From NCBI GenBank assembly GCA_977030845.1, contig OZ365110.1, forward strand, positions 45,818,001-45,882,000: a stretch of DNA of 64,000 nt, written 5' to 3'. The stretch comes from Fimbriosthenelais zetlandica (lineage: Eukaryota). This document shows, piece by piece, positions 19,998 to 59,900 of this stretch. The notes under the pieces were generated by a model. That model saw only the letters and a list, made by a program, of their open reading frames with translations. It had not been told where the DNA came from and searched no databases. How positions within the stretch are numbered: the stretch's first letter is position 1; each line of letters starts with the position of its first letter. The translations under genes were made by a program, and so were the position numbers.

Positions 19998-23426
<3,429 letters not shown>

Positions 23427-35713: not shown

Positions 35714-36239
35714 ATGAAGAAAAAACAGAAGTATGATGTTGGCAATGCTACAGCACCAGCTGCTGCCTCCAATGGTCCCACGGAAGCTGGGGCTGCCGAG
35801 GCCAACAACCACAAGGATGACAACAACCTCATCAAACTAAAACCGAAACTTAGTCTCGTCAATGGAGTCACTGTCATCGTCGGTTCTATTATCGGTTCTG
35901 GCATTTTTGTCAGCCCTAAAGGCGTTCTCCAGTACACAGGATCGGTTGGCATGTCCTTGCTTGTCTGGCTCCTGTGTGGTCTCTTTTCCCTCGTTGGTTC
36001 ATATTGCTATGCTGAACTGGGAACAGCCATAACTCGGTCGGGAGCAGACTATGCGTACATATTGGAAGCGTTTGGACCTTTCCTCGCCTTCCTCCGCCTC
36101 TGGGTTGAGTCCCTTATCGTTCGCCCCTGCACTACTGCCATCGTTGCCCTTACCTTCTCCTACTACCTGGTCGACCCTCTTTTCCCTGATTGTGAGCAGC
36201 CGGAGATTGCACTCAGACTCTTGGCAGCTGTTTGCATTG
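35714..36239 (+). CDS. L-type amino-acid transporter (SLC7A5/SLC7A8-like) first coding exon, copy A (N-tail plus TM1-TM3)
   Basis: aaaATG..., 175 codons + 1 nt, donor ATTG|GTGAGT. Encodes [55 protein letters not shown] (the Cys that bonds to the heavy chain) and LLAAVCI. Confidence 0.92.
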
Positions 36240-38920
36240 GTGAGTCAATATTGAAGTTTCTTTCTTCTATAGATCTAGGTACTTGACCATTGCCCCAGGC
36301 AAGACGTCAAAGTAAACTTGTTTCCATCTTTCAGCATACAGGATACAGGGGGTCTTGCAGAGTGATGTTTTTAAGCAAGTTACTTTGTAGTAAAATTCCA
36401 TTTTGCCCACATTTAGTTGCATATTATCTGTCTGTACGTTTACAATATTTAGTACAGATGCACTGGGCAGCATTAAAGCGTAAAAAAAGATAAATATTAA
36501 AATTTTTATGAGAAAATGAGTTGTAATAACCCTGCGTAGCTACAAATATTCGATATAATCGTTGCATGTTTTTCTATAATTTCTTATAAATCATAACACA
36601 AGATACATTTTGGAAGTATGTATTATTTATAGATAGGCAGTCTCAGTATTGTTGCTAGGCAACATTATTTAGTGGATGTAATTTAATACATCAGGCATGG
36701 CGTCACAGATTATAATTAGATTTATATCTTATGCTTCTCAATACATCCGACTGATGACAAGTTTCCTAATTCAATGTCACAGTGAGTCTCTATGTAAGGG
36801 CTGTATTTGTCACCCATCTTCCTTTTTCTTTCTTATTTTATATTTTAGTATCTACCCTCCTAAGGTTATAAGAAGCTCATTGGCAAAATGACAGAAGGAA
36901 CGTAAAAATAATATAGGGGGCGGTACCATTAGGCGTTGTATAAAAGAGTACTTAGTAGATATTCTCTTTAAAACAAATCTTAGTCTGGGAGCTTTCCGCT
37001 TCGCCCTACCCCTAAAAAACTTGGTGGGAAAGCTCCCCCACCGCCCAAAAAGGAAAGTACAATGTAATCTACACGGTGCTTTAAAATGTTAGGATAGGTT
37101 CGTTAAGCTTTTCGCTATAGTCCCTTATGGCACGCCCCCCCCCCCCTTTACACCACCCTATAATTAAGTTATCTTTTCATTTCAAAGTTTTTATTTGAGA
37201 AAGGTATTTAGCTAATCCATAACTCATCCATCTTTTCCATTGACCCCCAGTTCAACCATGGATAGCTTAATACGTATATATAATATAATATTTTCATGTA
37301 GCCTACACATAGCCTTGCTCAGACCAGTATACTGATCTCGGCCCTTTGAAATTCCAGTCACGATTTTCCGAATCCTTGATTTCCGTAACATAATATTTTA
37401 TCAATAAGGACTAATCACGCTCGAACAAAGCGAGAACTAATTTTTAGGTAACTTGCAACCCCTCGGAAATGATCACTGGAAATACTTTGATTATGTTTGA
37501 GTTGCCAGATACGCAACCCACAAGTATCAGATTATTTTAAAGGACATAATGTCCTCGGAATTATAATGCCCTCCTACGCAAAAGACCCTTTTCAAACCAA
37601 ATGTTTTGTTTAAACTGCTGTTCTTTATTGACTTTTAAACCCAAATTGTATTTACTTGAGGGTTGGTGCCACCTGGCATTGAGCTGGAACCTGTATTTGG
37701 TCGCACATCATCGTACATGAGCAAGACCACCATGTCTAGCTGAGAGAGGCTATTTACCTATTGTCAAGGTTGTCTGGATCCATAATTTAATCAGGTGATC
37801 CATAATTTAATCAGGTGTTTTGTATCAATATTATTGTTTGGTTTTGCCACCTACCTATTGAAAAATGCGCAGCTACATACATATTTTGGCATGACCTTGT
37901 ATTCACTAAATTATATTCTGAGCCAATCTGACTAGTGCAATCTGCACATTCTGTTACTCAATACAACACTGAAAAAGTATTTCTTGTGGTCTGTTGGAGA
38001 TTGCTCTAGTCCAAATTACATAGCCAGATCTCTACGTAGGTCTTTTCATGGCACAAAGCACCATATAATCCAAAAAGGGCACGGGTTAGGGCCCTAACTT
38101 TCCAAGATGTTTTCATTGGTCAAATAGTAATTCTTTTGGACCACACAGGCTGCACCCACCTTTCCTAAATCCATCCTAAATCCAATATATTTCATTATAT
38201 CCCTTGACATTGTTACTGGCTCCAGATCAACATTAGAGTAGTTAATGTTTGGGATGACCCTGATGACTGCACCTTGCATAATTTAATGGTACAGTGCGTA
38301 TAACCTATTCTAATCTATAGACATACCACTCTTTACAATGGGACATAATTGTACATAAATTAATAATATAATTGTGTGTACATGTATGTATTTCAGCCTG
38401 TTGCAATTACCAGGTGTGTGTGGAAAACAGCATTGCATGACTGGTAATATGCATAGTAATTGAGCAAAACATGCAGTAATTATATCCTAAATTGTATTTA
38501 ATGCACTTTTATCAGATGGTGAGCAATTGCAGTTATGTTGGTGCAGAAAGGAAAATTAACTAATCCAGAAGAGGAACAAATCATACTGTATAATTATACA
38601 ATGTGTTTACCACGGAATTATCGTAAAATTTCAATATCACCTGCTAACAAGTTAGTAGGTGGTATTGATATATTTTTCTATAATTTTTAAATAGAAATTT
38701 ACTTTTCCCATAGATTATTTGCAACAAATGACAATGAACTTATCGAATTTTGTCCCTGATACCGCGCAGCAGCAGTGCATTTCATTATAGATAACATAAT
38801 AAAATGATTATGAAAATTTGACAGGGTACAACTACTCTAGCTATATAGATAGCTGGACATCACAGGCTCCATTCATAACATTTGCACAATGTACAATAAA
38901 CGCACAACCCCTCCAGCCCT

Positions 38921-38995
38921 TAGACGAGCGCTCGTCCCTATGACACTCGATCAGTGACAGAGAATCCAATCCAATCAAAGACTTGCGCAAGTCTA
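38921..38995. mobile_element. Second copy of the palindrome-ended mini element (see 9147-9278)
   Basis: TAGACGAGCGCTCGTCCCTATGAC ... CAAAGACTTGCGCAAGTCTA. Confidence 0.55.
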
Positions 38996-41900
38996 TCCAG
39001 CTCTCTAGACCCATATTTTACTGTCATATCTCCGGAACCTCAGTGTGTTTTTTTGACATCTGATGTTGTCAAGTCATAGAATGTATGTCATACGCAACTC
39101 AATTACTATAGTCATAATGTCATAATGACACTCTGTCAACTTAACCTCAGAGTAATGGTTATAAGGCCAAATTATTTTTTAGTGCACATCACTGTGCATT
39201 TCACTTTTTTTTCGTTCTCTCACAATTTTTGGTTAAATTCAAGTTATTTAGCCTTAGGTTACATCTAGGCCATTCGTTCTGTTCTGGTTTCAAGACATTT
39301 TATTTTTTTATTCCTCGATACAAATAACGAAAATGACTCGTATAAGAGTTGCATTTCTTTACATTTTCAATAATAATTGGGATTGTATAATCAAACCTTT
39401 TTGGCAGTGGTGGTGACGCTAAACACATTCCTTTTTTGTCTAAACCCCGGGATATAATCACACCAGTTTGATAGCCTTCTCTTATTATGAAATCGGCCTC
39501 TGGTCTGCACTAATAACATTGTGACGTGTCCCATATAGGTCATTTATGGCTGGATAATGACTTAATTTACGACAGACAAAACAGCCCTGGATGTTTGTAT
39601 TTCTGATTTAATGCAATTGATCACGTTCAGTAGTGTGGTAATAAAAATAATAGTAGGGGAAATTATATAGTTGACTGTTCGGAAATCTGTGGTTGAAACT
39701 TATTAGTAATGAATAGGAAAAAATGTGAAAAATTTATTATAAATGGATTTTAAAAATGTGAATAAATTAGTATAAATGGATAGAAAAAAAAAGAAACATT
39801 TAGTATAAATGGATAGGAAGAAATGATGAAAGAAGAGACATACAATGTACATATGTATAGTGAGAAAGTGAATATTCAATCAAGCTAAATTGGGCATTGA
39901 CTGTCATGCAGTTGCTTTCAATTCTTAATGTAGAATTCTTTCTTTCATTCAATAAGTGCATTAAATCTTTCTTCGCCGGGAAATGTAATTTCACACTCAA
40001 TTTCTTTAGTATGTTTTATGATTTCATCGCATTTCATTACAACTTCAATGCTTTTGTATTCATAACTGTACTCCCCTGTAACAGTTGCCTGTGGAGTTTA
40101 TTAAATAGTTCTCTCAGATGTGTTATCTGCAATATACTATGACAAACATGAAAGATTAGTGAAAATTATCTAGATGTTTTTTTGTCAGTAGTTTCCTACT
40201 TTTATTCATTATAGCTGTAATTTCAGCAGCTTTCAAATTCCACTTATTAATGCATATATTTCACACTTCCTGCACATGTACATGAATAGTTATAAGACTT
40301 CTTTGTTTCCAGAGATAATACAAACATACATTGTTTTACAAAAAAGGAATTTTTACATTGTAAAAAATAACTTCATTTGGTCATTTTAGGACAGTTGAGA
40401 ATTGAATTTTCTTTGAGAAAACATGTTTTTTAAAATTTTGTTTTATGAAACAACCTCAGCCTCTTGCAGCTCTGAAGTGAACCTTGGCTCACTTTTCAAA
40501 ATGAATTAGTGAACAACACTATACCGTTGATACCTACATAATTAGACAACAGCTTCCTGTGTATCTATCACCTTCCAGTTTCCTACTTAACGTTAATCTT
40601 TATGATATAATTGTTCTACCTCAATTGCCTGCTTTGTTGATAATCTAAAATGGAGTGTCTGTTATAGATAACCCGTCTACACATTGTCATTGAGTTAGGT
40701 ATCCTATCCTGGTTAGAACATTGATGGTACATTAGACCCCTCAGTTGAAAAAGTTGTAAAATTTACTTATAATTATATTTCATAATTTTTTTTATATTAT
40801 TCACTGTGATAACGTCCTCAGCTTACTTTCCCGATCAACTATACACTCCGACTAGATCTGACCTCTACTTTCCAACCACTTTCCGATTATATATTAATTT
40901 TATCTATAGAACAATATATTTCCCCCATATAACTTCATGATATGATCAGTAAGTCTTTTTTTGGTCCATTGCATTGAGAATCTGCATATAAAAACTTGAC
41001 CATATCTTATACGTTCTTTTGTGTATAGGATACTGTACTTGATACATACAATACACACAAAATTGATAAGAAATGTAAAAATAGAAATGCAATACTACTA
41101 TGCTACTCATTATTACCCTTCTAAGGGCCAGAGCAGGGCTACTCATTTACATCACTGATATTCATAATTTGCCTCCGGAAATTCTGATCTAAATGTTATT
41201 TTTTACTTTTTGTGAGTGTCTCTACTTGCTCCAGTGAACTTAAAAAAAAAAAAAAAAAAATTGACCCGCACATCTTAGACATTTATCTCAGTCATAAATT
41301 CGGAAACCGGTTCTGCTTCTATAACTGAACTTCAACCGTTCAGTAGCACTTCAAATTTAAATTCCAATCATTCTTATTTTGTCCACTGATTCGCAAACCC
41401 CTTGCAATGCCTTACGAATCACTTGCAATGTTTTTCTCATGTTTGCAAGCATGTTCCTCCACTTTGAGAATGGAGAGTTTGCGAATGTCACTCAGACGTC
41501 GCAAGCAGTCACATCTAAAATTAAAATCATTTGATTTTTGTATTCACAATAATCGCAAGCCCTCCTCCATTATGATGATATATTGCTTGCGATTAAATGC
41601 CTGCGAAAATATTCTCAGAGCTATCACAAGGCAAAAATTTACAAATATTGGAGTAGCTTAATATTGTAAGCTTGGGAAATTAGCACAAGCCACCAGATGA
41701 TATTTCACTTCAGCCCACTTCAGATTTGGATCTTTATATAGAACTTTCTATTTATAGACATTATTACCATCAATAATATGTGTTTTTGTTTTGTTTTGTT
41801 TTAAAAATATTTCCATTTTTCTGTCCTAACATGGCCCAGTAACCTCAGATTCTCAAAAGGCAGGTGTTACTGATATTTTGGATCTTTTGTGTGTGTTATT

Positions 41901-43449
41901 TATTGCCCTTAAAAAGTTTTGTTGACACAGGATCGTGTTACATCGTGTGATCTGTGCCTTTGAACTCTGACAGTTAATAAACAGTTCTCTAAACAGACCA
42001 GACAAATAAAAATTAGACGTAGAAAGTATACATATATGTTCATATACAGTACTTAGTTCCCCCTTCAATTCCCCCAAGCACTCTCCAAAATAATATGCCA
42101 ATGTCCCTCGAAACGCAGTGCTGCTCTATAAAGGCGAGGGTCATAAAAAGAAACCCCGGGAAAAGAAACATAAGAGTGCAGCCGTCAGTTTCAAATTTAC
42201 ACATAGGAAAGCCCCACAGACCCTGACTCTTGCCATCTTGGAAGGTCCATAACAGACTGAAGCGAGTTTCTCGGGCTAGGCATAATAATGCACCCCAATA
42301 TAATATTATGGTACAATAATGTCATATTTTTAAGTAGAAAAAAAAACAAAAAATGGTTGAGAGTATCATGGTCCATGTGATTATCCCCAGACTGTAAGTG
42401 ATACCGGAACAAGAAATGTTGATGTAATAATTGACAGAAAGTTTTTGTTTTTATTTTGTGAGCCTGTAGGCCTACTCTCATGAAGTCCCATTGAACTCAT
42501 GGGAAGGTCACATGCATCTGCTCTTCCCCACTCACTCACCGGTTGCCTGGGAGTGGGAAGTGATCTAGGTCAGCATTTTTCTAGGTCACTTCTAGGTTTA
42601 TTTATCACATATCGGTGGCAGACAGGTAGGCCAGAGGCTGGGGTCTGGGACTTTAGGCCAAAAAAATCTGTTTCTACGGCTCCCAGTTTCAGTAAACTTA
42701 AATTTTGAATAAATCCATTCACCACTAAAATTCCATCTCGAAAAAAGGTTAAGAATATATAAAACTCAAAATAATGATTTCATATCATATATTTAGGGCC
42801 AATTGGCACAATTTTAAAAAAAATATTCAGTCGAAAGGAATCTTGGCTTACATTACACTGACATTAAATTTGTAGGGAATTTCAGGTTTCGTCTTTTAAT
42901 ATTAGTTTAACATCGAATTAAAACCTAAAGTTTCTTTACCTTTTTAATCACCTGTAATCGAACTTGGTGTACAGCCACACAGTTTTACTAGTCTTAGTTA
43001 TTTTTATTATAGAATAGCTCTATTCTATCTAGTAATATAGGGCCCTAGATATCAAAGAAAATGTTAATGAAAATGCAAGATCTTGTCAAAAGGGACATAT
43101 GACAGAATGATGGAATGACTTGACAACCTTATAGTATGTTATAGCCTCTGGGGAACTAGTTGGTCATTGTCAGACAAAATGCTTCATTATCATGAGAGGT
43201 CTTTAGATTTGCCACTCAGTCATAATGTTTGCCCATCTCCCCTGATGAACTATTGTTCACTAATGTTCCTCTTGGGTAATTAAACAGATTTCCCCCAATT
43301 GAGTTAATTGGCACAATAAAAAAATTATCATCCACCCCTGTCGAATTTCCTCTAGAAAAGAGTAGTTTTTTAAAAATTGTTAATAGTGTGTCAATGAATG
43401 CATTTAATTGTGGTTCCTTCAAAATATTTTGAGTTACAGCTTCCCTGGC

Positions 43450-43800
43450 TCACGAGTCAGAGTACATCAGAGTGTTCAACTGGAATTTGGGACGTCTTGG
43501 GTTCAATTCCCGTAACAGTTATTACCAGTTTATCCAATAGTCCTTCCACCAGTGCTTCTAAATGGTTTAGCGAAAGCCAGTCATGTCTCCCACTGTCTAT
43601 GGTGAGAGGCATATAAAAGGCCCGTCATGTCTACAACTGCCTATGTTGCATGAGTAATATATAAAAGGCCATTCATGCCAGTCTCCCGTGCATTGTCTAT
43701 GGTGATGGACATGTAAAATGTCAGTCATGACTCCCACTCTCTGTGATAGGAGGGTATTTTATAAAAGGCCAAGCCTGTCTCCTATACCAGAGACCGTATA
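43450..43800 (+). mobile_element. Degenerate tRNA-derived SINE with an internally duplicated 3' part
   Basis: B-box-like GGGTTCAATTCCC at about 43499, followed by tccaccagtgc..tggttt..gtctatggtga..catataaaag; the ctccc..gtctatggtga..taaaa segment recurs 2-3 times. Confidence 0.5.
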
Positions 43801-44494
43801 TACTGGCTCTGCCTATACTGCCTATCAACCTAGCGCTATGATGAGAGAATAATAGAACCATTGCTGACAGCATATTTCCTACTTGTTGAATTGGAAGTGC
43901 AACAAAACTTGCTTTCACATTGACTATATCAGAGATGCAGCATTCTGAGAATGCATCAAAAACATAATTAATCAATGAAGCCACTTTTACCATAGCCTCC
44001 CCCTTGCTTTGAGCTGAATCCATCCACACATTTTACCAAATCCTGACATACACGATGTTCTATATGTTCATATATATTATTTTTGTTCTATAACACCATG
44101 CCAAGCCTGAGAATAGCTCTGTATGCTGCGAGTTGTTCCACTTTAATGAGCTTCATTAGGACTGGATGGTCGCCCAGGGAGCACTAGCATACCGAGTAGA
44201 TACCACACCTCCCTCACTCTCTCACTACCCTCAAGGGGGCGCCTCTGGGCCTAATCAAACGCCACTCCGACCTCCATGCCTGACATTTGCCATCCCGACT
44301 CTTCAGATGCCCACAATCCTTAATCTTATTTTTGTACCAAAATCCCTTCTCTGTTTCCCTCAATCATTAATCTAGATTTTATTTTTGTCCTATGGATTCT
44401 TGAATTATAATTTCTCTGATAGCGTTTTTAATGCGTTGCTTTAAACCACCTATTTCTAATGTTAATTGGCAGGAGATTTAATGAATGTAATGAA

Positions 44495-44715
44495 ATTTGG
44501 GCGGGTTGCGGAATCCCAGTTGGCTTGTAGAAACAATCTCGCTCGCCAATAAACCATGTTTGCAGCAGAAAATGCGTGCATTGCTGAAACCAATCAGTTT
44601 CTGCTCGCCGCCAAAATAAGGTCTAGCCCTATTTATTGTTGGCGAAACATCGCAAGCAAAAAAAAAAAGAAAAAAGTGGGCGATTTTGGTCAATCGCAGG
44701 TTCCTAACCCTGGCT
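44495..44715. mobile_element. Interspersed repeat copy related to 960-1105; CCCTG end suggests a hAT-like non-autonomous element
   Basis: Shared blocks listed for 960-1105; terminates ggttcctaaCCCTG. Confidence 0.6.
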
Positions 44716-45360
44716 CCGTCCGGACGCCTGGTGTTTTGTTTATGAACTAAAGACACTCATGGAGTTCCTATTTTTTCCGTTACTCTTGTGGTGGCAGAAC
44801 TGTTGTAGGCTATTGAATTAGGAACTCCAGAAGTCTGTTTCCAAATGAATATCAACCATTAGCATTTCTAATATTCCTTTTGAAACAGGCCTCAGGTCAA
44901 AAGCACCTTTAAAGTATATTTTTACATTTATCATACTAAGCTATTTCTACCAACTTTCTTGGACCTTGGGACAACAACAAAACAACCCTTCTGGAACAAA
45001 TTAATGTCCAAATTGTACATGGTCAAATTTCCCATTCGTTTTCATATTACAGTCATATCTTTCATTCATTCTTTTCTGTCCTATTTTCTTGGCAAGTTTC
45101 AGCCACAAAAACTATTGGATTGTTGCCACGCGTCACAACCAAACACTGAATAAAGTACACCCTCCCACCGTCCCATTCAATAAATATCAACGGGCCCAGT
45201 CAAAACACCTTGAAAATCCCCGCCCACCTCCCTCCTCCCCCACCCCTCCCCACCCCAGGCCTTAAGTTTCAATACACAGTAAGACTCCCACGCGTTAATC
45301 CCCTGCCCACCTACCCTCCCTCCCTCCCTCGCTTTCCTCAAACACCTTTTCCCGTAGTGG

Positions 45361-45453
45361 TGACGTCAGAGCGTTCATTGCATCAGGGACGCCTGCCCAT
45401 AGAGTGGCATGTGTGAGGGAGCCGTCAATGAATGAGTGTGAGGGCCACGTGAC
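45361..45453. promoter_or_regulatory. Enhancer-like cluster: CRE, C/EBP-ATF amino-acid-response element and E-box, about 1 kb upstream of SLC7 exon 1B
   Basis: TGACGTCA 45361-45368; ATTGCATCA 45377-45385; GCCACGTGAC 45444-45453. Confidence 0.6.
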
Positions 45454-45949
45454 AGAGGCCGGTCCCCCCGCCTGGGGGAGGGGGGCACTCCAAAAAAAGG
45501 GCTACCATGATGCTACTTCGCAGTACTTTTAGGAACATCATGCAGACCTTTTCAAGTGATATAATTATGTTGATATATTTTCATATTCCCAAGACACTAT
45601 TTGGAAAAAAGTAGGGTATACCTTAAGAACATCGCATTATAAAATATATACCCCAAGTAAAAAGCTTTAAAACAGGCCCACTGCCCCATTTTTCCCATTA
45701 ATATTCCCATTATTGTTTTGAAAAGCACAGAATACACTATTTAAATATATACATAATGTATAATTAAAATTGTCTATTGGGCAGATGGTGATAGGCCTAT
45801 TATTAAAAAATAAAATAACTATTTTAAAGCTATTAAAATATTTTAAGTCTAAGAATGATACAATAGCATTCAGGGCTGTAGGCCCTGGAACGAAAGACTG
45901 AACCCTACTTTTTGAGAGTACCCCCTCCCTCTTCCCCAGCCGAGTGGGG

Positions 45950-46300
45950 GGGATAGTAGGGGAGTGGGTGGGGCGGGCGTGGGGCGGGACAAGCAATAAC
46001 AAAACAGCACGCTGCAGCGGAACTGCCACGAGAACAGAGTAAACTGCCATCACTGGCACGGTTAATACAACAAGGGAAGCTAGTGATAAACACACAACCC
46101 AAGCAGCTCCCCCATTCAAAACTTCAGTCTGGCCATGTGAGTCTTACCATACGGACGTGCATATATACATAAGCCTACAAGACATGGAGTGAGTTCATAC
46201 TACTACTGGAGCGGTAGAATATATTAGCTTCAGTCAGCATCCTTTGATTCAGAGTAACCTACACAACGGACTATAAAGCGACTGCTGCTGCTGCTGCATC
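45950..46300 (+). promoter_or_regulatory. Core promoter of SLC7 exon 1B (GC boxes, TATA box)
   Basis: GGGCGGGCGTGGGGCGGG at about 45970-45987; TATAAAG at 46272-46278, about 140 bp before the ATG. Confidence 0.55.
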
Positions 46301-46414
46301 TGCTCATACCAAACTCTCTCCCTCTCTCCAGAGCTAGGCCTATAACCCAGGTGTATCATCATAGTAGTCTTCATATACCCACCTCCTCCTCCCTCTACCT
46401 CACGGCCCCCTTAG

Positions 46415-46949
46415 ATGCCAAGCATGGCGGGCGGAGGGGATGTAGAGAAAAATTCAGCCAGCAAGAAAGATTCTCTGGCCGCCAATGGATCGGTGGCCAG
46501 TTCGGGCAAAGCCCAGAGTATTGACTACGATGATGGCAAGGTTAGGCTGAAGCCGAAAATCACGCTTCTCAATGGAGTCACTGTCATCGTGGGATCTATC
46601 ATAGGATCTGGCATCTTTGTCAGCCCACGAGGTGTATTGGAGAATACAGGCTCCGTGGGTCTATCTCTCATCGTATGGGTCCTCTGCGGCGTTTTCTCTA
46701 TGATCGGTGCCTACTGTTATGCTGAGCTAGGCACTGCTATTGTCAGATCGGGAGCCGATTATGCTTACATTTTTGAGGCCTTCGGACCTTTCTTGGCCTT
46801 CCTCAGACTGTGGGTAGAGTGCATGATCGTGCGCCCCTGTTCTACAGCCATCGTGGCTCTCACATTTGCTTACTATGTCATCGAGCCACTCTTTCCCGAC
46901 TGTGAGCAACCAGCCATAGCCGTGCGACTCTTGGCTGCTGTCTGCATTT
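46415..46949 (+). CDS. L-type amino-acid transporter first coding exon, copy B (N-tail plus TM1-TM3)
   Basis: 178 codons + 1 nt, donor ATTT|GTAAGT. Same motifs as copy A and ends at the identical codon and phase (LLAAVCI). Confidence 0.93.
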
Positions 46950-46993
46950 GTAAGTATATTTTACATTGACATTGCCATTGTCCCCCTCCTCTT

Positions 46994-46998
<5 letters not shown>

Positions 46999-47072
<74 letters not shown>
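46999..47072. repeat. (CT)n microsatellite, about 37 units
   Basis: Uninterrupted CT run 50 bp downstream of the exon 1B donor. Confidence 0.95.
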
Positions 47073-47074
<2 letters not shown>

Positions 47075-48908
47075 GCCCATCCCCCTGTCTCTGTCTGCCA
47101 CTCCCCCTTGTGAAATTTCACCTTGACCGGGTTGGGGAAGCATGGGGGAAACCAGTTCAGGGCGGTATGGTTCTAGACATGTGCTCCAGCTGCAGAGACA
47201 GCAGATGGGGCATCTGCTTCTCCTCCACGGGTTGTAGCATGAGTAACTCCCTGACCAGGATCTGCTCCCCCAACCCTAAAATTAAATATAGACCAACCAC
47301 GTGTAGAGTGGGAAAATCCATAATTATCCCTCCCCACCTCAACCTGTTACTGAAAATATAAGTCTCCCAAACCAACTCTAATAATTTGCTGATCTGGCAG
47401 TTTCCCTCTATAATGTCCCAGATATTGCCTGTCCATTGGTATTTATGAAATTTTAATTGATTTTTTTTTACATCCATGTTCTTTGGTATTTGGTATTTAT
47501 TACTAGACCAATGCATTAAATCCTGCATTAAAGTAGCGATATGTATACCTCTCAATCTATTTACTATTTAATACATGATACTATAAATATAATTGAAGTA
47601 TTTAATTGAGTGGAACTATTGGTTCTATTTTATTGTCTGTTATAATAAGGATACGCATATAGCCACAGGGAATTTGAGCCAACTAACCAGCAGATTTTAC
47701 ATTATCTGCCATACCACGCCTCGCTCAATTTGAAAACAAATCAAAGTAACATACCAACAGATAAAATATGGCCAAAATAAAATATAGGCCTCAGTTCCAC
47801 TCTCAGGGCTTGATAACCATCGGTTGTTTGGAACAAACTTAAGAGAAAAATGTCGGATGGGTTGACCTATAGTATTGGCCAAGTAACATTGAATTATGAA
47901 CTGAGTCAGTGAGTCAAATGCAGGTTGTAACCATGCATAGCTAACCTGCTGGGACAGGCCATTTCATCACCATGCCCATCCCACGTGGGTTACCAACACA
48001 CTCTATGTAGGCCTACTGTAGCCTACTGTGAAGGAAAGGTGTGCACACACCAAACCGAATGATGCCAACCGACCGACCGATTATGCACATTTATGTAAAC
48101 GTCTATCATATCGGTCAGTTTGTGAACCGACAAAAGATAGATATGGAATAATGAAAATTTGCAGATTGCATAAAAAATAAAGCAATTTGGTCTATGTAGA
48201 TTATAAAGTATATTAAATATTTGGGTGATTGGTCCGACTTTTATAACATTCCTGTCTGTTGGTCAGGTTGGTATGAGTTTGTTCTAGTTTATAAAAGAGA
48301 TAGGGAACCGTTGATAGAAAGATGTGTAGAGACGAGAACTCCTGGTGGGAGCTAATCTACGCTAATCTACGACTTCTAGTCGCCTGGTTTTATCTTGAAA
48401 AACTAACACACTGTCGCTACCTATACTTTTTCACAGTACACTGTATATCCAGCTTCCAGAGATAGCTTGGAGATATACTGTATTGCTATCTCTTGGACAT
48501 TATGGGCAATCCTTACTATTCTTGTTTAAAATGAATAAGATTAAAAGTAATTCCATTGAACCATACCTGCTCTCTGCATATTTCAGATCGCCCTATAGTG
48601 TCTTTTAATATCACAGTGTCTTATAATGCAACTGTATATTTATGCTTTGAGTAAAATACTATAGTGGCATTAAATAACACATTAAAACACAATGTTATCT
48701 ACGTTTAGGTATCATACTTGTTGTGGATTGCGAATTAATTGATAAACGGTATTCTAGAATATTAAATACACACGTTTATCGTAGCCTATTATGTTCAGGA
48801 AAGCTTGTTAATAGACTAAACAATAATGTTTCTGTCATAGGGAACAATAAATATTATGTTTTAGGGGACAAAATTCACACATGTATGTGAAATTACAGTC
48901 AGTGGGCG

Positions 48909-48917
48909 TGATGCAAT
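48909..48917 (+). promoter_or_regulatory. Perfect C/EBP-ATF (AARE) site in the intron after exon 1B
   Basis: TGATGCAAT; TACGTCA lies about 30 bp downstream. Confidence 0.45.
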
Positions 48918-49666
48918 TGTCGAAGTCTGACAAACGTAGGCCTACGTCAGGAAAACTGCCCAGTAGATCTGTGGCCATTACGGTCTATTTACCTCAGTTT
49001 TATTGTCCCATAATTATAGTCTCCAGTTCATATTTCCTAGCCGAACATGGTGACGAATCAATGTACACAGTTTTGATTAGCATAGTTCTAATCATGGGCA
49101 TAGCATACGTATGTATTTGATAATGACCCCTTAGGCCTGCTGTGGCCAGAGGCCTTTTGTTACAAAACCACACGTTTTAACGGTTTTCTTGACAGCTGTA
49201 GTGGTTAAATCCATTGGAAAACTATAGAAAATCCTCTGTTTGTTTCTATTGGAAAACTATAGACAATTCTCTGTTTGTTTAGGATGAAATATTCTTGTTT
49301 TGGTCTAACGCATCGAGACTGGGATACTAGGATCTACCTATACCCAAATATAATGCACCAGGTCATGTTGGCATTTCTACCGGAAGAGTAAACACAATTC
49401 TGCTCCAAATATTTGATGTTGGACCACGTGACTCGGATGTTTTGATATACGATATATGTTGTAATGAAATATATGCTATAGTAGGAGCAAAGATCGTTAT
49501 CAAAAAAGTGCATTCCCACGAGTGTTAGAGTAGGCTATAGCCTATAATATACATAGTTACCTGGCACATTTATTTAGTTATAATTATACATTCCATTTAA
49601 CAATTATTTCACCTGACGAACTGTTTGACAGTAGATTTTCTTGTTGCGTTTAGCAGGAGTTGGTGA

Positions 49667-49675
49667 ATTGCATCA
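49667..49675 (-). promoter_or_regulatory. Perfect C/EBP-ATF (AARE) site in the intron after exon 1B
   Basis: ATTGCATCA. Confidence 0.4.
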
Positions 49676-50859
49676 TCCTATAACCCATTTTTGGAATTAA
49701 AATGTCAGTTCAGGATACCGGTCCCCACCTCGCCAAGAGATTATTTTTTAGGCCGCAATTAATTTATGGTATTTAAATATAATACTGACTAATTTGGCTA
49801 TTATAAATCTGTAAACATAGTTGTTTATTCCAATGTCAAAGAGTGTCTTGTGACAAATTGGGTCAAATATTATATTCATGAATATTTTTGGGGGGTTATT
49901 CTGCCATGGTAAAATGATTTTTTACTTTAACTAACTTTTCTTAAATCAAGGATTGGAATGCAGAAAAAATAAGCTTGTAATAGATACGTGTCAATTAACT
50001 ACCCTGCAGGCTTTTTTTGGTTCACTTCAGATGGGTGTCGTTCAGGTGTTGGCATCATTCTTCGTTTTAAAGAAATATAGCATTTAGTCTTCGTGTATTA
50101 TTTGTTTTCTAACGAACTGTATGAAGGATTATGAAGCTTACCATGAATACATATGTGAGGTAACACCACAAAAGCCATAATCTTACATAATACCATGTAA
50201 TATGGACTTAATGAGCTGAATTTATGATAGAAATATGCACGCAGTTAAGTATTATGTCTCCGAACACATGCTGGCCAAGTGAAAAGCAATACCCAAACAA
50301 TGCAAACAATGCAAAGTGACCAAGCTTTGTTCAAACCCTTCTTGTTATGAAATTTCAGCAACAGTTGCATCCAATGTGTGAAACAGGGATAGAATTATTT
50401 TCCTCCCGATTCCTGGACATATTTTACAAACTATTTCTGGAACAGTTATTAGATTTCACATTAGATTTAAATTAACCAAAAATAGTGATTGTATCCTAAA
50501 AGATTTTTGTGATAGCCTGACACCTGTTCGATCCTCAGATTTAGATTTAGACTCAGATTTAGTTGAATCTTCATGGAGAAAAAAATCCGATTTTAGTTGT
50601 TGCCCATCCTTGAGTCGGTCTATCTCTTTTTAACGGTAGAAGAGGGTTAAGGAGTGAGGAGGGCAGCTGGTATGGTATTCATCTTCTAGTCATCTTTCCT
50701 TTTGAAGTTATTCTACATCAGCTGTGTTCATGTTCAGCTTCTGGCTTTCTGCCTCTCAGAGGTGACTCAGTGCAAACTCAAGCACTCAATGCAATATAGC
50801 TTCTCATACTTTCTTATTTCTACCCATCGCTCTTAATTGTTTTTGTCTTGCTATACATG

Positions 50860-51090
50860 TGCTCCCTCCCTTTGTCTCTCTCCTCCCCTCTTTTCCCTCC
50901 CCCTCCCTCTTCCCATCCACTGACTCCCTTTCTCTCCCACTCTTCCCATCCCTTCTCTCTCCTATCCCTCACTTTTCGATCTATCCGCTCCATGTCCCTC
51001 CCCTCACTCCCTCCGCCTTCTCCCTCCCCTCCTCCCTATTCTCTCCATCTCCCCCCTCTCCCCCACCTTCTCTTCCACACATCCTTCTCA
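50860..51090. repeat. Long polypyrimidine (C/T) low-complexity tract, intronic
   Basis: About 230 bp dominated by C and T. Confidence 0.85.
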
Positions 51091-54000
51091 TAATCTTCAT
51101 CCTTGTGCAATGTCCTGCCAGTACAGAGTGCAGGGCGCCAAGGCCACACACCCTGCCTTTTAGATACCATCAAAAGTGAACAACAGATATCTGGAGAATT
51201 ACAAATAAATAGAATATAAAAATAGGGAGGTCATATGGTATAGGGGATGACAGGAGGTCTTGTGATTTGACTTTTTATAAAGCACTCTAAGATCCTGGTC
51301 CTACGCATATTCCAAAATCCAAGGACAGTCTGTCCTCATCCCGAAAGGCCACTTGTCTCTAAACTGGAAATGTTCCAGTGAATACACAAGGTCGGGGTGC
51401 CGGTGCGGGGTTGCCTTTTCGGAGATAATTTGTTGTCACTCAAAATAGTAACTTTTTTCATAGCTGACATCCCACCCCAACTCAACACCACTCTTTACCT
51501 CATTTCTCTCCAAAGTTTGGATCCCTGCCCCTTTGAATGCTTTATAGTAAATTTTTATTTAATAACTAGACATTTGTTTGGGTTCACATCCTGTATGGAG
51601 TCTGCAATTAAATGGCAGATGTGTTAATTAGTGCATAAAGAAATAAATTGGGACTCATTAAATATCATTATATTAAATATATTAGATTGTCAATGATGGC
51701 CTAATGAGTGGGGAAGTATATAGCCTATATTCATTGTATATTATATGAATCAGAGAATACCAAAAAGGGTTCAGTGTCTGGTTAAATACGCCCAAGTTAG
51801 AAGTGGAAATAATCTAAGGCTCGGTTATGCCTAAATGAAACTGTCAAAACTGAATATTATTTTGACGAATTATTATTTAATCAAAAAAATATGATTAAAT
51901 ATTCCGAATATATTGACACATTCTGTGAGAACATATTTAGAGAATGTTACGGTATGCTATCTCGTATACATGACCCCTTAAGTTAAGGCATGCATGCATC
52001 AAGATTTCAGACATTGACCGATTGCAGACAAATCACTGATTGTCAGAATTTCTAAATTGAAATAATGAAGAATAATGTCCTAGACGGACCAGAAATAGTA
52101 TTTTCTAACTATTATTTTCATTGAAACCCTCAAAAACTGAATAGTAGGTTTTAAAACCTTAATGATTATAGGAATTACGGTACCTGAATTGCATTCCTTC
52201 TATCTTGTATATAGAAGCCCCTAAGGGGCTTTGGAAGAACTGGTCATTTTATTGATCAATATAGGATAGATTCTCTCTTCAGGGTTACCATTAGCCCTAC
52301 ACACCTGCATGCAGACCATTTCATGAAGGAGTTGCCCTAAAAATTAACCTATTTTATTAGTATTTCTAGTGAAATGTCACAACCGTGAATGCTTCATTTT
52401 CAGAGTGATTAACCTCAATTCAAACCTATATGACAGATAATCAGATATGATTATATGATCGATTTAAATGTTTCCCAGATAGCTTTAGTGACATTTAGAA
52501 CACATTTCCAACATTTCTACCTGTCAATTTCCCTCTACATCATGCCCAAACCCAGACAGCACAGTTCCAATACGAAGACAAGCCAGCCAGAATGTCATTA
52601 TAAAACAATATATCAAGTCATCGAGAAGCTAAGCAGGAGACTCTCCATGCTTATCGAGTTTCCCACTAGAAGTCCGATCCAGTTCCCTCTCATCCCACTC
52701 TCAGTATCTCTCAGACTCCTCTCCACTCACTGGGGCCTGTTCCACAAAAATTGTATTCATATAATAATGTACAAAGGTCTTATGTACCAGTCAATGTGAC
52801 TCAATAAGAAAATCTGATCGGAGCATGCACTCGATTACTGGCAATTTTTCTCCAATCGCATGACAAGAAAAACGCAAGTAACCAGAGACCGTCGTAGTCT
52901 GTTTCAGTCATAAGACTTCGGTCTATATAATAAACAATACATGTATATGTAGTCTTAGGCATTGGGTTATAATTGCGCATTTTTATTATGAGACAAACTC
53001 CAAAATAGCAGCTGTGCACGCTCACATACCAGCAATGTATATCTAATCTAAAACAACTCTGTGTGTGACCGAAACTTTGCCTCTTTCCCAGTGCTTTATA
53101 TGATAAGATAATAGATTACATGTATCTTCTTACTGTTTCTTACTGCCCGATAAAATATGTGAAATGTGTCCCAGTTATGATACCATGGTTAAAGTCTGTC
53201 TTTCATAGACCCTTTGGCGATTAAAGGGCAATATTATGATTTTTTTAATGATCCCCCTAACATAGGTTATCAGGGGTGGATCCAGATGTTAAACTTACTC
53301 TTTTTTTTTTTTTTTTTGGGGGGGGGGAGGGAAATTTGTGCACATCATTTTTTTGGTGATACATTAAATGTAATCGAGATATCTTTGATCATTTTTTGGG
53401 GTGATACGGTAAATTTAATGTAAAGTCGATATGTCTTTGACCTTTCGAACTGTCCATCAGATGTCGATTGATGTATAATTATAATAAAGTCACACCAGCT
53501 GGTGTTCTTCACTGTCCTTCCCTTCTACAGTTGATCGACACATGGACATGACATGGACAGGTCAACAACACATGGTCATGTTTGTATGATAGGCTTCATG
53601 TTCACATCTCAAACTCTGACATGACATCATTCTCTTCATGTCAAACTCAGAACCCCTATAATATAGACATGAATATGAACAGTAGAATTGCAGGCCATAA
53701 CCCTTAATCCAACAAAATGCTATGACGAAACAATTTTTCTATTCAATAAGAAGTCTGTTAATCCCTTCTATACATAACAGTGATGAATCCTCATGTCCCC
53801 TGAGTTTCACAAATAAGGGTTGAACAGAGTGTGTCGACAGTCTTTCCACTAATCTTGAGATATCTGAATGGATGGTAAACAATACACAATAACAAATCCT
53901 TTATCCATTGTGCTGTTTCGCTATAGGCCATACATTATAGGGAATCCCGGATATATGCAGTGATGGCCCTACAATACACGTACTAGACACTAGTTTACAA

Positions 54001-55749
54001 GTGCACCTTGGAAAACATGATAATTTTTGGGGCAGTGTTGTAACTTATTTATCCTGTTCCACAATCAATTCACATTAGCTATATAGTGTTAATATAGACT
54101 TGAAAGTCTATTATATTATTAAGTATCTAATTGTGTAGGGGTCAGGGCCTTAACATTACAGTACATGTATAGCCCGTTTATGATGTGCCAGCCTTCATTC
54201 AGCCTCCCTATCGCAACCTCTCTCACGACCTCAAGGGGTACGGACAGTAGGCCCATACAGCCCAGATTCAGTTATCATAATTATGTCATATAATGTCGAT
54301 AGTTAATATCCAATAACTCCAATAGGCTTTCCATGAAAATATCTGCCACTGACAATGCACCAAACCCCAAAGAATCGAGATCAGAGTCAGTTAATTTTAG
54401 TTAGTTCACTTGAAACTTAAATATCTCAGAGTGGCAAGTTTCAATGTAATATACGCTGATTTTGATTTTATTGCTTGTCGTTTGGAAGGTTTTCCAATGC
54501 TTTTAATTTGAATATAAGGTGATACGAGCAAAAAAAATGACCCCAATATACTAACAAAAATGTAATGTTTCCAACTAATACCGATTTAGAATTGTAAACC
54601 ATTATTCGTTAAGATTGTCCATAGAAACTTATAATATAGGATTGTACAAGAAATTACTACTACTGAAAACGTTTGAACTTTTCAAAGTCTCAATGGAATT
54701 CTAGGAATTATTTCTGTTTGACATCTCTGAAACATGTTGTTCCCCTAGGCTTATACTTTCCCATGTGAGTAGTGTAGTAAATCTGTCCATGGTTCCAGGC
54801 CTTTCTCACCCACTCACCACCAATATACTATGGGGACCCTAACTGATTCTGCTAATCGACCACTCTCCTCACAGTAAGCTTTCCATCCCCCCGCCTACCC
54901 CCCAACATACCGCCCAACCAAACTGTCCATATTCCAAGCACCCAATAAACACATTCTTTCACTTTGCCCTCACACATTGGGATGGTGCGCCAGACTAAAG
55001 GCTGTCCGCCATTTTGCTTGCGACAGTTCTAGAACAAAAATATTTGTACATGTCGCAATGATAAATGTACCAGTGGAGGACGGCCTTAAGGCCTTGGACA
55101 CCTCAACAAAAATTTACAAATTTGATAGTGACACAAGCATCACCTTTGTATCAGCAGTTAATTAATTACCGCGTTGTATCACTTCAATGGTTCTGAAGTA
55201 TTTGAAAATAATCTTAACTTAATCTTAAATTTAATTCTGTTTTGTCAACAAAAAACCTCATGTTCTTTAAGTATTCAATTCCCTAATGGCCTGTCATGAG
55301 GCTCTTTTTTAAGTAAGATGTTGTGTCGTCTGTTTTTCTCGTTGCTCGTTTCTTTATCAAAGATCAGGGCCTGAGACTCTACCACTCGCCTGATTACATT
55401 TCTCTTAAAGACTGTGGAAGACCTCAGTCTGGTGATGTGCACAAAAACCAGCCAACATCTATAGCTCTAAGATAGGAGCTATATGTAGGTTTTCCACTTG
55501 GACCTGTTTATTCCTGAAGCTTGTTTCAAAAGCAACGTTTTCAATACCGATACTTCAATACTATGTAGTCAAAAGTTCGCAAGTTTTTCCCCTTAATTAA
55601 AGTACTTTAATATGGAGCCAGACCACCACCCGCCTTAAAGTGTGAAATCATGGTAACTGATATACATGCAGCTGTTTTATCAGAAATTAATGTAGGCCTC
55701 AGACTACCACCTACTACTGTTGTAAAGGACTTAAATTTATAAAAAGACT

Positions 55750-56750
55750 TTTGAGATGGCCATCAAGTCTGTGGCTAATATTTTCCTTTAAATTCTAAAG
55801 GCATCAGTAGTGATTTTCTTGAGGACGAGTGATGAAAGGAAATTTTGTATGTTCAAATCGAGAATATTTCTTGTTTGTTTGACTGATAGTTCGGTCCATC
55901 AAGTCAAGCCAGTTGATTGGCAATTGCGATTGATCAAGAAAACGAACCAGTGGACATGGGCCTTAATCTTAAAAGTTCTGACCTTTACACCAGACCTGGC
56001 TTGTCCTTCTTGTCCACAATTTGATTTTGGTATTCTATACGTTCTCCCTCGCTTCAGGGATAAAACCTCCTCTTAGGTACTCGATACATCAGGACTGATT
56101 GGGTTGGATAGGGGGAAGGCAGGTGTCCTCAGATTGAGTTTGGGTGGAAAGGGCGAGGGCTAGTATCTGTCAATCAGGGTTCTGTGCCTTAGGTTTATCA
56201 TGGCTGAATCAATGTCTGATCTGTAGTATTATAAGAAATGGACTGGGGATGTTTTGGTAAAGGTGGAGTCAAAATGGATGAGATGTTTCCTTGAGATATG
56301 CCCGGAATTGTGGTATAGATATAGGCATAGATATTGACATGCACTTTATGTATGTAGTACTTTATGTATGTAGTACTTTACAAGGTATAAACTATAAAGC
56401 CAGTGGTTACCATTTATTTTTTTGGTTGCAAATTCAAAAGTTTTCAAAATTTTTATTATGCCTTCACTGGAAAGATGATTATTTTGTTTGCCTGATGCAC
56501 AGACCATTGTACAACAATGCTTAAGCATGCCCCAATTGCCCAAGTCTTTCTAGGCAATGGTATAAGTGCACTTGTCCAATGACCCCTTTATTAAATACAC
56601 AAGTGTGAACGAAGTCCAGTGACTCCACCATAATAGCATCTTGATGTGAAGGCATTAACACTAAATTATTATCCATTATGATAAGCAGTATTTGCCTGAT
56701 GTCAATCACCACCCAACTTCCCACATTGCTCCGTTGTGGAGCTCACCCTA
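55750..56750 (-). mobile_element. Possible heavily decayed CR1/L2 LINE relic (end of endonuclease and linker)
   Basis: Broken minus-strand frames give PSHQD..ESLDFVHT (cf. PTH..GHTLDLV.T) and KVRTFKIKAHVHWF (cf. K.RT...RP..PWF). Many stops; weak similarity. Confidence 0.3.
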
Positions 56751-58759
56751 CTCCAGCCTAAGCACTGTTGTCAAGTACTGATAAACTGTAGAATTGATAA
56801 TAGATGTGAGATAGAACTACTCTGACATCTTTTATAAGTTTATCAACATCCCTCTTCATTCTAACACGTCCTTTATTGCCACCTGTGAGGCTCTCTTATC
56901 TTAGAAGAGATAAGGTGTTATAATAGGATGGCTATTGACAATATCAGGTCTATGTAGATCTATATAGGCTATAGCTCTAGGGGATGACTGTAACTGATCA
57001 TCTGGACATGATCTGTTTTTTTTGGTATACAAAAGAATCTTCGCATAACGGTCACAATGTCAATAACGAATATCATGCATAACTTCCTGTTATAACTCGC
57101 TCAGTCAGTGTACTGTCATTGTACAATGTCTTATTTAGAGCATTGTACAACGGTGCTTTAAGCAATGGTTGTAAAATGCCTGTATTAGTAAGGTGCTTTA
57201 ATGTATATAGACAATATGAGGTCTTTCACATGACGTCACAACTCGACGACGTAGGCTACGTCCAAACAAAATTCAATTCAAGTACATTCATTCTTGGTCA
57301 ATTGCAATCTGGGTAAGCCTGGCCAACCTTAGATCTAGCAAAATTACATGAATGATAAAGTGACTTTTCGACATAAACTGTGTTAAAATTCAGACTTGTT
57401 TTAGCCTGAAAAGGTCAGTTTTCAAACTGAGAACTTACTCTATTAGGTCGAGATGGCAATATATCGGATATCCCTGCCTTTAAATCATCAATCTCTTCAC
57501 CCAAACATCTGTATTAATGACTCATGGATTTGACAGTTGTTTAAATAGTAAAGCTTGATTAGATGGGATACTGTGAGCAGGCTACTGTGTGATGAAATGC
57601 TTGATTGGGTAGCTCAGTGTGTGGCAATTAATTTATAATGTGCCTTAATTGATGTAGGATTCCAGCCTCTGAAAGATTTATGCTTCACTGGAGCATTCAG
57701 TCAAGGTTGATAGTTGATGCGGGCACTTATTATATCAATGCAGAACTGAACTGAATCATGAAATTCATGATGATTGGCAGATATTGTATGTTCAAAACGT
57801 GGAGTGTAAATCATTTATCAATGCAGCCTTTAAAAAGATGAATAAACAAGATACTATCATGGTACATGCTTATATTAATATATACTTTCTTCCTTGAAAA
57901 ATATCTTATCTGTTGATTTTGACACCAAATGAATGATATTGCCATCACTTGACATGAAAAAACACAAATGAACATAATGCTTTGGGGTCAATCCTATCTC
58001 TATAGTTCAAGATGGCACATATTTTGTGTGTATAAATCCTATGTAAGATATGGATCAAGAGATCAAGACTACTGGTTCAGTAAGGAAAAGACACGCCAGA
58101 TATCTGTTTTATCTATGACCCATATTATATGATCAAAGTGGTTTAGGTGTTATCAGTGAACTGTCCTCTGATTAGCAGCTGTTGTTCTCCAAGGAAACAG
58201 CTGTTATTTTCAAATCTGATGAACCGTATTCCATTCTCACATTCACAATAAATGTGAATGGTGGGGGCTTGAAGTTTTTGAAGTAGTCAGGATTTTTCTC
58301 AATTTGTTTTATCCAGATAAAAAATAGTAAAAGTATTAAATGTTTGATTGATTTCGTAATATATACTAGTAATTAATTTTAGTTTTATTAATTGATAAAA
58401 TGATTAAAATAATGTGATGAAAATTGTCGGTTATATATATATATAGGCTTCAACCAACCCAGCATGGAAAATGTTTCCTCACCTTTTTTATTAATATATA
58501 ATGGAATTATGGTAGATTAAAATGCCTTAATTTTGGGATAAAATCGGTACTTAAGTTCGAGATAATAGTAAGGGCTCCCCCAAACAATAAAAATCTTTAA
58601 AATAATATAGTCTTATGGCATTATAATTATATTAGGGAAATTCAGGGAATTCTGACGTCATTTCAGAGTGTGGAGCTGGTATTTAATCTCATATTTTCTT
58701 ATTAATATCGCAAAACAATATTGTTGAGCTATTTTTGATGTTTAATGGTTTTCTTGCAG

Positions 58760-58885
58760 TAATTCTGACTGTGGTGAACTGTGTGGATGTGAAGTGGGCA
58801 ACACGTGTTCAAGACATCTTCACTTACGCCAAGCTTCTAGCTCTAGTACTCATCATAGTCACTGGAGGTGTGCAACTATTTAGAG
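58760..58885 (+). CDS. SLC7 transporter exon 2 (TM4-TM5); the only copy seen; gene continues beyond the window
   Basis: Acceptor ttttcttgcAG|, phase 1, encodes [42 protein letters not shown], donor AG|GTAAGC. It joins in frame to either exon 1A (..VCI-V-ILT) or exon 1B (..VCI-L-ILT). Confidence 0.92.
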
Positions 58886-59009: not shown

Positions 59010-59900
59010 GTCAATTAATCCGTCTAAGGAACTGAAATGCCTTAAGGTATTCACTAGCTTTGGAGGCACAGTGCCTTGATGAATTCCCCAGCAACGGAGG
59101 CGTAATGCCTTGAGAAATTCCCAAGTAATTGGAGGCATAATGCCTTGAGAAATTCCCAAGCAATTGGAGGCATAATGCCTTGTGGAATTCCCCAGCAACG
59201 GAGGCGTAATGCCTTGAGAAATTCCCAAGTAATTGGAGGCATAATGCCTTGAGAAATTCCCAAGTAATTGGAGGCATAATGCCTTGAGAAATTCCCAAGC
59301 CATTGGAGGCATAATGCCTTGTGGAATTCCCCAGCAATTGGAGGCATAATGCCTTGTGGAATTCCCCAGCAACTGGAGGCATAATGCCTTGAGAAATTCC
59401 CAAGCAATTGGAGGCATAATGCCTTGGGAAATTCCTCAGCAACTGGAGGCATACTGCCCTATAATTTCCCCAGCTAATAATGCGTTGAGGATTCTCAAGC
59501 TTCCAGAGGCACAATGTCTTAAGGCGTCTGTATATTTTTACTTAAGAAATAGAAAAACTTTGATTCCCAAGTGTAAGTCGCATGGCAAATTAAACTGTCG
59601 CAAGGATTGTATTCAGTTGGAAAAGTGCAAACTTTTGGGCAGACATCTTGATAGTAGAATCTCTAGAAAATGTCAAATGAGTTGGCAAGATACAGGAGCA
59701 ACATATGGACTTGAACATCTAAACATGAGATGATGTCTTGAGACTATGGTGAAGAGAAAGTCGCCTTGTGTGAATAATAGCATCATACGCTTAGTGAATC
59801 CATCAGTCTGCTGGAAAATCCCACACCATACATTGCCCCATGAGGTCACCCAGGACTTCCCAGAGGTCATATAGGGCAGTCCATGTACAACACATTAAGT
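59010..59900 (-). mobile_element. Decayed CR1-like LINE reverse-transcriptase fragment, interrupted by the minisatellite
   Basis: Minus-strand pieces in RT order: DIISCLDVQVHMLLLYLANSFD (cf. D...LD...VD...LDF.KAFD), W..KFF.FLSKNIQ, VPLEA*ESST, then GIPQG / GIHQGTVPP. Confidence 0.5.
59062..59475. repeat. 34-35-bp minisatellite, about 12 units
   Basis: Unit ggaggcataatgccttg(agaa/tgga)attccc(a/c)agcaatt with an internal dyad AGGCAT-A-ATGCCT; no unique spacers. Confidence 0.95.

Follow-up and report, generated by a model that had tools for sequence, protein, structure and literature searches.

Two first coding exons and one second exon in the window

The stretch of DNA analysed here (hereafter, the window) comprises 64 kb of the forward strand of contig OZ365110.1 of Fimbriosthenelais zetlandica (NCBI GenBank assembly GCA_977030845.1, positions 45,818,001 to 45,882,000). 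It contains the beginning of a LAT-type amino-acid transporter gene in which two paralogous first coding exons, here called 1A and 1B, precede a single second exon; exons 3 onward lie outside the window. Exon 1A (35714-36239, +) is a stop-free run of 175 codons and one base that supplies its own ATG, a 40-residue N-terminal tail, the first three transmembrane helices (TM1-TM3) and a loop cysteine aligned to C164 of LAT1, and its last base, G, is followed by a GTGAGT donor. Exon 1B (46415-46949, +), open over 178 codons and one base and ending in T before a GTAAGT donor, likewise has a start of its own and encodes TM1-TM3 and the same loop cysteine, behind an N-terminal tail that differs from that of 1A. 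The two exons break off at the same codon, in phase 1, and each has a consensus donor. Exon 2 (58760-58885, +) lies between a ttcttgcag acceptor and a GTAAGC donor and its frame fits either first exon, the split codon at the join reading GTA (Val) from 1A and TTA (Leu) from 1B. When aligned to P0333, a spliced, transcript-like relative, exon 2 matched from residue 138, i.e., directly after the end of exon 1. These observations bear out what an earlier examination of the letters alone (the sequence-only reading) had described, namely two intact paralogous first exons with open frames, GT donors and unrelated tails, both ending in phase 1 at the same codon and both in frame with exon 2. It had also given each exon an ATG of its own; both do have their own start, but that of 1B, which had been placed at 46415, is probably the second ATG, at 46424, because orthologues open with MAAG or MSAG and the ATG at 46424 has A at -3 and G at +4, and because an in-frame TAG directly precedes 46415.

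The whole 64 kb was searched by tblastn with six full-length LAT proteins, which detected no hidden exon 2, body or third first exon. A sensitive tblastn search with P0333 (word size 2, E up to 20) returned only 1A, 1B and exon 2 from the window, the rest being at chance level. Since the matches were limited to these three exons, we conclude that the window has no third first exon and that no hidden exon 2 or body lies between 1A and 1B, in agreement with the earlier claim that this interval lacks exon-2-like sequence; exon 2 at 58760 was thus the sole match of its kind. The 10.2-kb interval itself (36240-46414, +), in which the best tblastn match had an E of 3.7, contains no LAT exon; it would be intron for transcripts that begin with 1A and would house any promoter of 1B. 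The 11.8-kb intron between 1B and exon 2 (46950-58759, +) was covered by the tblastn scan. Comparison of the window by blastn revealed no second copy of the exon 2 region and no duplicated flanks.

Both first exons matched Pfam AA_permease_2 above the curated cut-off (1A, E 2.4e-17; 1B, E 3.7e-16), and a search against solved structures, run with exon 1A as the query, returned y+LAT2 as the best match (E 2.6e-55) together with y+LAT1, xCT and LAT1 (range, E 1e-55 to 1e-49). The G-S-G motif of TM1 (GSIIGSGIF) is identical in 1A and 1B, and both contain LFPDCEQP, which aligned to FPTCPVP of the vertebrate LAT1-like protein P0075. LAT1 numbering was calibrated in the alignment to P0075 on G65 of GSGIF and on C164, which lie 99 residues apart, as expected. 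In LAT1, C164 is the conserved cysteine of the TM3-TM4 loop that forms a disulfide with the heavy chain. P0333 is full length and 92% identical to 1B plus exon 2, and the mollusc orthologues considered below are also full length. On the strength of these similarities, the gene is classed as an SLC7 light chain of the heteromeric amino-acid transporters, of the LAT / y+LAT type within the APC superfamily.

Divergence and constraint of the two exon types

Across their conserved cores, 1A and 1B share 110 of 135 residues (the sequence-only reading had counted 110 of 134) and 72-74% of their nucleotides. Synonymous sites between the two are saturated, with 0.78 of synonymous (pS) and 0.11 of nonsynonymous (pN) sites differing, and omega, the ratio of nonsynonymous to synonymous rates (dN/dS), is not estimable for this pair. 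Their N-terminal tails are unrelated (5/40 identical), and likeness at the DNA level, as judged by blastn, ends ~13 bases into the intron and is absent upstream of the conserved cores. Two such copies on one contig might reflect an assembly artefact, e.g., a collapsed or duplicated haplotype. We give this virtually no credence and found nothing in its favor. Between the copies, 26% of nucleotides differ, synonymous sites are saturated, and neither the tails nor the flanks are related; moreover, each exon has its own orthologue in other assemblies. The artefact was rejected on the divergence of the copies and the separate orthologues.

Protein searches returned close relatives of both exons and no entry from the window's own genome. 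The orthologue of 1A (P0151) is 81% identical overall and 129/135 in the core, and it shares the MxxKKxYDV start; that of 1B (P0153) is 87% identical overall and 130/135 in the core, and it shares motifs in the tail. These two orthologues occur on one contig (ENA ERZ25767047, ctg38692) at 485-994 and 30480-31005, respectively, on the same strand and in the same order as in the window. The stretches covered (1-19065 and 20480-48651 of ctg38692) yielded no LAT body exon, either in the interval separating the two or in the 17.6 kb that follow the second. In a third genome (ERZ26222911), an A-type exon (P0154) and a B-type exon (P0164) lie on a single 398-kb contig. The layout therefore recurs in a related genome and both exon types share a contig in another, as the sequence-only reading had proposed to check, and the duplication took place, at the latest, before the three closest genomes split. 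Since no body lies between the two exons here or in the related genome over the stretches covered, we rejected the possibility of two complete genes in tandem.

Selection was assessed by Nei-Gojobori estimates over the cores. Exon 1A and its orthologue gave a dS of 1.76 and a dN of 0.039 (omega 0.02), and exon 1B and its orthologue gave a dS of 2.2 and a dN of 0.052 (omega 0.02); the dN/dS comparison that had been suggested is thus saturated between 1A and 1B and informative for each exon against its own orthologue. Because 96% of residues have been kept while synonymous sites have approached saturation, 1A is a working coding exon and not a relic. This bears directly on the possibility that 1A is a non-functional duplicate of exon 1 alone and that the transporter is made from 1B only. 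Such a duplicate would fit the finding that no A-type transcript-like protein was retrieved for this lineage. However, the frame, start codon, donor and heavy-chain cysteine of 1A are intact in the window and in two more genomes, its omega is 0.02 at a near-saturated dS, and the annotated full-length isoforms of three gastropods include ones with an A-type exon. We therefore regard this explanation as very improbable, and a pseudogene relic was rejected on the selection data.

The paired layout in gastropods and other animals

Isoform pairs with the same arrangement were found by a search with an A-type exon inside a 309-residue open reading frame (ORF) and by a whole-protein search with isoform X2 of Haliotis asinina. 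The sequences of isoforms X1 (P0273) and X2 (P0287) of H. asinina coincide throughout the final 331 residues, and those of isoforms X1 (P0309) and X2 (P0311) of Gigantopelta aegis do so throughout the final 329. Both pairs split exactly between LLAxxC(I/V) and (L)LLTFVNC, which is the boundary of exons 1 and 2. At the H. asinina locus, first exons at 10001-10504 and 21558-22055, 11.5 kb apart, precede an exon 2 at 40863 and one compact body that extends to 47781; at the G. aegis locus, first exons at 10001-10501 and 31248-31739, 21 kb apart, precede an exon 2 at 53978 and, again, one body. In a third gastropod, Plakobranchus ocellatus, a pair of such exons on one strand, with 40 kb between them (BLXT01000492.1, 188472 and 229216), is annotated as separate fragment genes. 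When the first exons of the window, the related genome, Haliotis and Gigantopelta were compared, 8/8 ended in phase 1 with GT[AG]AGT. RefSeq isoform models usually rest on RNA alignments in NCBI's pipeline, and we assumed this for the gastropod pairs. The layout of two first exons in a LAT gene is therefore real and not unique, being already in the databases as mollusc isoforms X1 and X2; the sequence-only reading had known of no LAT gene with this arrangement. We found no description of alternative first exons of a LAT gene in the literature, which is weak negative evidence.

The gastropod loci also bear on whether 1A might be a stand-alone short protein of three helices, or part of a separate gene that continues outside the window. 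Purifying selection on its own is no proof that 1A is spliced to exon 2, and the body past exon 2 lies beyond the window, both of which leave room for that view. Against it, a phase-1 donor stands at the same codon in all eight exons compared, the frame of 1A read past its donor stays open for no more than 16 codons before a stop (its end is at 36286), a single body follows both exons in Haliotis and Gigantopelta, and no second exon 2 was found in 47-64 kb. A stand-alone role for 1A thus appears unlikely.

Taken together, these results favor, with a probability of about 0.8, one LAT gene with two alternative paralogous first coding exons and one shared downstream body. The window would hold the 5' part of this gene, most of the body being beyond it. 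Each first exon would provide a start codon and encode a cytoplasmic N-terminal tail, TM1-TM3 and the loop cysteine for linkage to the heavy chain, and each would be spliced through its phase-1 consensus donor to the same exon 2 and body, yielding two transporters with different sequences over about the first third of their length. Both junctions (36239>58760 and 46949>58760) are presumably used in this species. The central proposal of the sequence-only reading, i.e., one locus with two interchangeable first exons and a shared body, is accordingly well supported, the support being comparative throughout (omega of ~0.02, no body between the exons, and the RefSeq pairs).

Several points weigh on the other side. 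The case for use of both junctions in this species is a comparative one; the window displays the single body as far as exon 2; and RNA support for the RefSeq A-type models is assumed from NCBI practice. No A-type exon was present among the spliced, transcript-like proteins retrieved for the window's lineage. When spliced A-type sequence was sought in protein databases and in JGI metagenome contigs, the spliced sequences were of B-type or other kinds and the A-type matches were genomic; among the proteins retrieved, the only full-length A-type ones were three RefSeq models from three gastropod species. Finally, the order of the exons differs, with A before B in the window and in the related genome and B before A in Haliotis, Gigantopelta and Plakobranchus.

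At ten core positions, A-type and B-type exons carry different fixed residues across the three closest genomes, and when five species were aligned, three of the ten differences also held in Haliotis and Gigantopelta. In LAT1 numbering, these are position 51 (Ser in A-type, Thr in B-type), position 100 (Ser in A-type, Ala in B-type) and position 144 (Thr in A-type, Ser in B-type). Ser144 of LAT1 lines the pocket for substrates and inhibitors and is replaced by Asn in LAT2, and the S144N substitution abolishes leucine transport (PMC11828871). Since the equivalent of position 144 differs between the types, the exon swap touches the pocket, by a conservative change. The sequence-only reading had held that the swap includes part of the substrate site; this is true of that one pocket position, with its conservative Ser/Thr exchange, and does not extend to the G-S-G motif of TM1, which the two exons share. 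The largest difference between the types is the N-terminal tail, which is partly conserved between species within each type (22/38 residues identical in B, 11/34 in A). The two isoforms may therefore differ in regulation or trafficking through their tails, or in substrate handling through TM2/TM3, including the Ser144-equivalent; we would guess that the difference in regulation or trafficking is no smaller than that in substrate handling.

The age of the duplication was addressed with phylogenetic trees of the exons. Under LG+G4, exon 1A of the window grouped with the gastropod A-type exons (ultrafast bootstrap, UFBoot, 70); in a site-heterogeneous tree, the A and B exons of the window's lineage grouped together. 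In approximately unbiased (AU) tests, monophyly of the A-type exons was not rejected (p 0.137), and neither was a clade of the A and B exons of the window's lineage (p 0.415). Either a single ancient duplication, with later rearrangement or gene conversion, or several independent ones, with parallel changes at 51, 100 and 144, could account for the pattern. If the duplications were independent, the same pair of isoforms would have evolved in parallel, which would imply distinct, selected transport or regulatory properties.

Beyond molluscs, isoforms X1 (P0399) and X6 (P0391) of the copepod Tigriopus californicus have first exons that differ throughout, as far as the same boundary. The two also differ in a short internal cassette (…LSLCYLCSSNIYALINYVGF… in X6 vs. 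…LSLIYLTSSNIFALINYTGF… in X1), which suggests that this LAT gene has two swap points. Other variants of the family were encountered during the searches. In the crustacean Macrobrachium rosenbergii, isoforms X2 (P0406) and X5 (P0407) are identical save for the last ~20 residues, suggesting an alternative last coding exon. Animal-derived contigs from JGI host-associated metagenomes (L008-L060) carry two paralogous types of exon 1 (…VRPCAAAI… and …VRPCIIAI…), both of which run into an intron, and therefore another lineage also has two versions of exon 1. The 910-amino-acid gene model P0001 contains two complete LAT units in series and is probably two tandem genes fused by the predictor, so whole-gene tandem duplication also happens in the LAT family.

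A broader idea is that LAT-type genes of protostomes carry a recurrent or ancient first-exon module of two cassettes, which swaps the N-terminal tail and TM1-TM3 and maintains consistent A/B differences at LAT1 positions 51, 100 and 144 despite the opposite exon order. We consider this tentative and rather doubtful at present. If it were true, a link to nutrient-responsive use of promoters might exist, given that all three canonical TGATGCAAT elements of the window flank 1B.

Choice of the first exon and comparison with known systems

Alternative first coding exons with their own ATG usually have their own promoters, and candidate promoter motifs (motif matches only) are present at both exons. 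Two GGGGCGGG boxes (GC boxes; 45970-45977 and 45981-45988, +) and a TATAAA (46272-46277, +) lie upstream of 1B, and an inverted CCAAT (ATTGG; 35442-35446, +) lies ~270 bp upstream of the ATG of 1A. The GC content rises locally at both first exons and is ~0.5 upstream of 1B. Alignment of the window with the related genome detected no conserved non-coding DNA, whether promoter or shared exon 0, and only the two exons aligned. With regard to starvation-response elements, TGATGNAAY occurs at chance level in the window (9 vs. 8.8 expected), and exact TGATGCAAT occurs three times (vs. 1.3 expected; 15/100 shuffles reach three), all within 45377-49675. Such elements around 1B are suggestive and not significant.

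The same two products could instead be made by a different mechanism of selection, in which a single promoter and a common non-coding exon 0 serve both 1A and 1B, these being internal exons that are spliced in a mutually exclusive manner. This arrangement is still a contender because candidate acceptors sit upstream of both ATGs: a possible acceptor (...ctactctcag) near 35591 (+) upstream of 1A and a candidate 3' splice site with a polypyrimidine tract (...ctctccag) at 46312-46331 (+) upstream of 1B, both read from the sequence. If 1A were joined to the site at 46331, a TAA would follow after four codons, and joint inclusion would thus be non-coding, as expected of a mutually exclusive pair. 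The gene ranges of Haliotis and Gigantopelta consist of coding sequence only and are mute on exons of the 5' untranslated region. Weighing against mutually exclusive splicing are the TATAAA and the two GC boxes upstream of 1B, the rise in GC content at both exons, the absence of any identified candidate for exon 0 or conserved non-coding block in the comparison above, and the usual association of such first exons with promoters of their own. We therefore hold mutually exclusive splicing to be the less probable of the two mechanisms, though one to be taken seriously, and suggest, with some reserve, that separate promoters, as proposed by the sequence-only reading, are the likelier means of choosing the first exon.

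The window also contains features that are apart from the transporter exons. A perfect (CT)37 microsatellite (46999-47072) starts 50 bases past the donor of 1B, and a 35-bp minisatellite (59060-59458; 11.5 copies, 88% matches) lies ~175 bases past exon 2. About 18 kb upstream of exon 1A, an open frame at 16444-17421 (-) encodes a Forkhead domain (Pfam PF00250, E 1.2e-26) and probably represents one exon of a gene for a Fox transcription factor; the adjoining ORF at 17825-18700 (-) had no Pfam match. Long ORFs at 5224-6537 (+) and 14014-15333 (+), of 437 and 439 amino acids, respectively, matched no Pfam family, and the former is of low complexity and is overlapped by long ORFs in other frames.

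The diversity of heteromeric amino-acid transporters is generally attributed to duplication of whole genes, as in vertebrate LAT1, LAT2, y+LAT1, y+LAT2, xCT and others. Here, one gene appears to gain two carriers by swapping the exon for the regulatory N-terminal tail, TM1-TM3 and the heavy-chain cysteine, and the two-exon module is strongly constrained and recurs at the same boundary in a copepod. The A/B pair thus offers natural chimeras for asking what the tail and TM1-TM3 add to specificity, trafficking or regulation. It also points to a pitfall of annotation, in that some pipelines split the two exons into fragment genes (Plakobranchus) and, in the P0001 model, fuse two LAT units. Genes in which variable first exons precede a constant body form an established class, and CAT-2A/CAT-2B is a known pair produced by exon swapping in SLC7. 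The interest of the locus would be greater if the two forms differ in function or if the parallel-evolution reading is true.

The closest counterparts are the gastropod genes annotated as 'LAT2-like isoform X1' and 'Y+LAT2-like isoform X2' in Haliotis asinina, as 'Y+LAT2-like' X1 and X2 in Gigantopelta aegis, and as X2 in Haliotis rubra, which represent the orthologous mollusc gene. As in the gene proposed here, two paralogous first exons (~165-170 codons in the gastropods, 11-21 kb apart) lie ahead of a long intron, after which come a single exon 2 and a single body. The gastropods differ in having the B-type exon in the upstream place that the A-type exon takes in the window, and their annotations are automatic. 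Human SLC7A5 provides another case in which the large first coding exon of a LAT gene has been copied, as partial duplicates (SLC7A5P1/P2 and related copies on chromosome 16). However, these are dispersed relics of segmental duplication without a shared body, whereas the exons described here are in tandem, with one body, and under strong purifying selection. In general design, the locus resembles UGT1A and the clustered protocadherins, in which tandem first exons with their own starts encode an N-terminal, substrate-facing part and share downstream exons. Unlike UGT1A (9-13 variable exons) and the protocadherins (dozens), the present gene has two, and its protein family is unrelated to theirs; the one promoter per variable exon that is established for those loci is here no more than a candidate feature. 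Within SLC7 itself, the mutually exclusive exons of SLC7A2 give rise to CAT-2A and CAT-2B, carriers that differ in substrate affinity; SLC7A2 thus obtains two carriers from one locus by exchange of a paralogous coding exon, as the present gene would. In CAT-2, however, the exchanged piece is an internal cassette of ~40 residues in the CAT branch, whereas here it is the first exon, with the tail and TM1-TM3, in the LAT branch of heteromeric amino-acid transporter (HAT) light chains.

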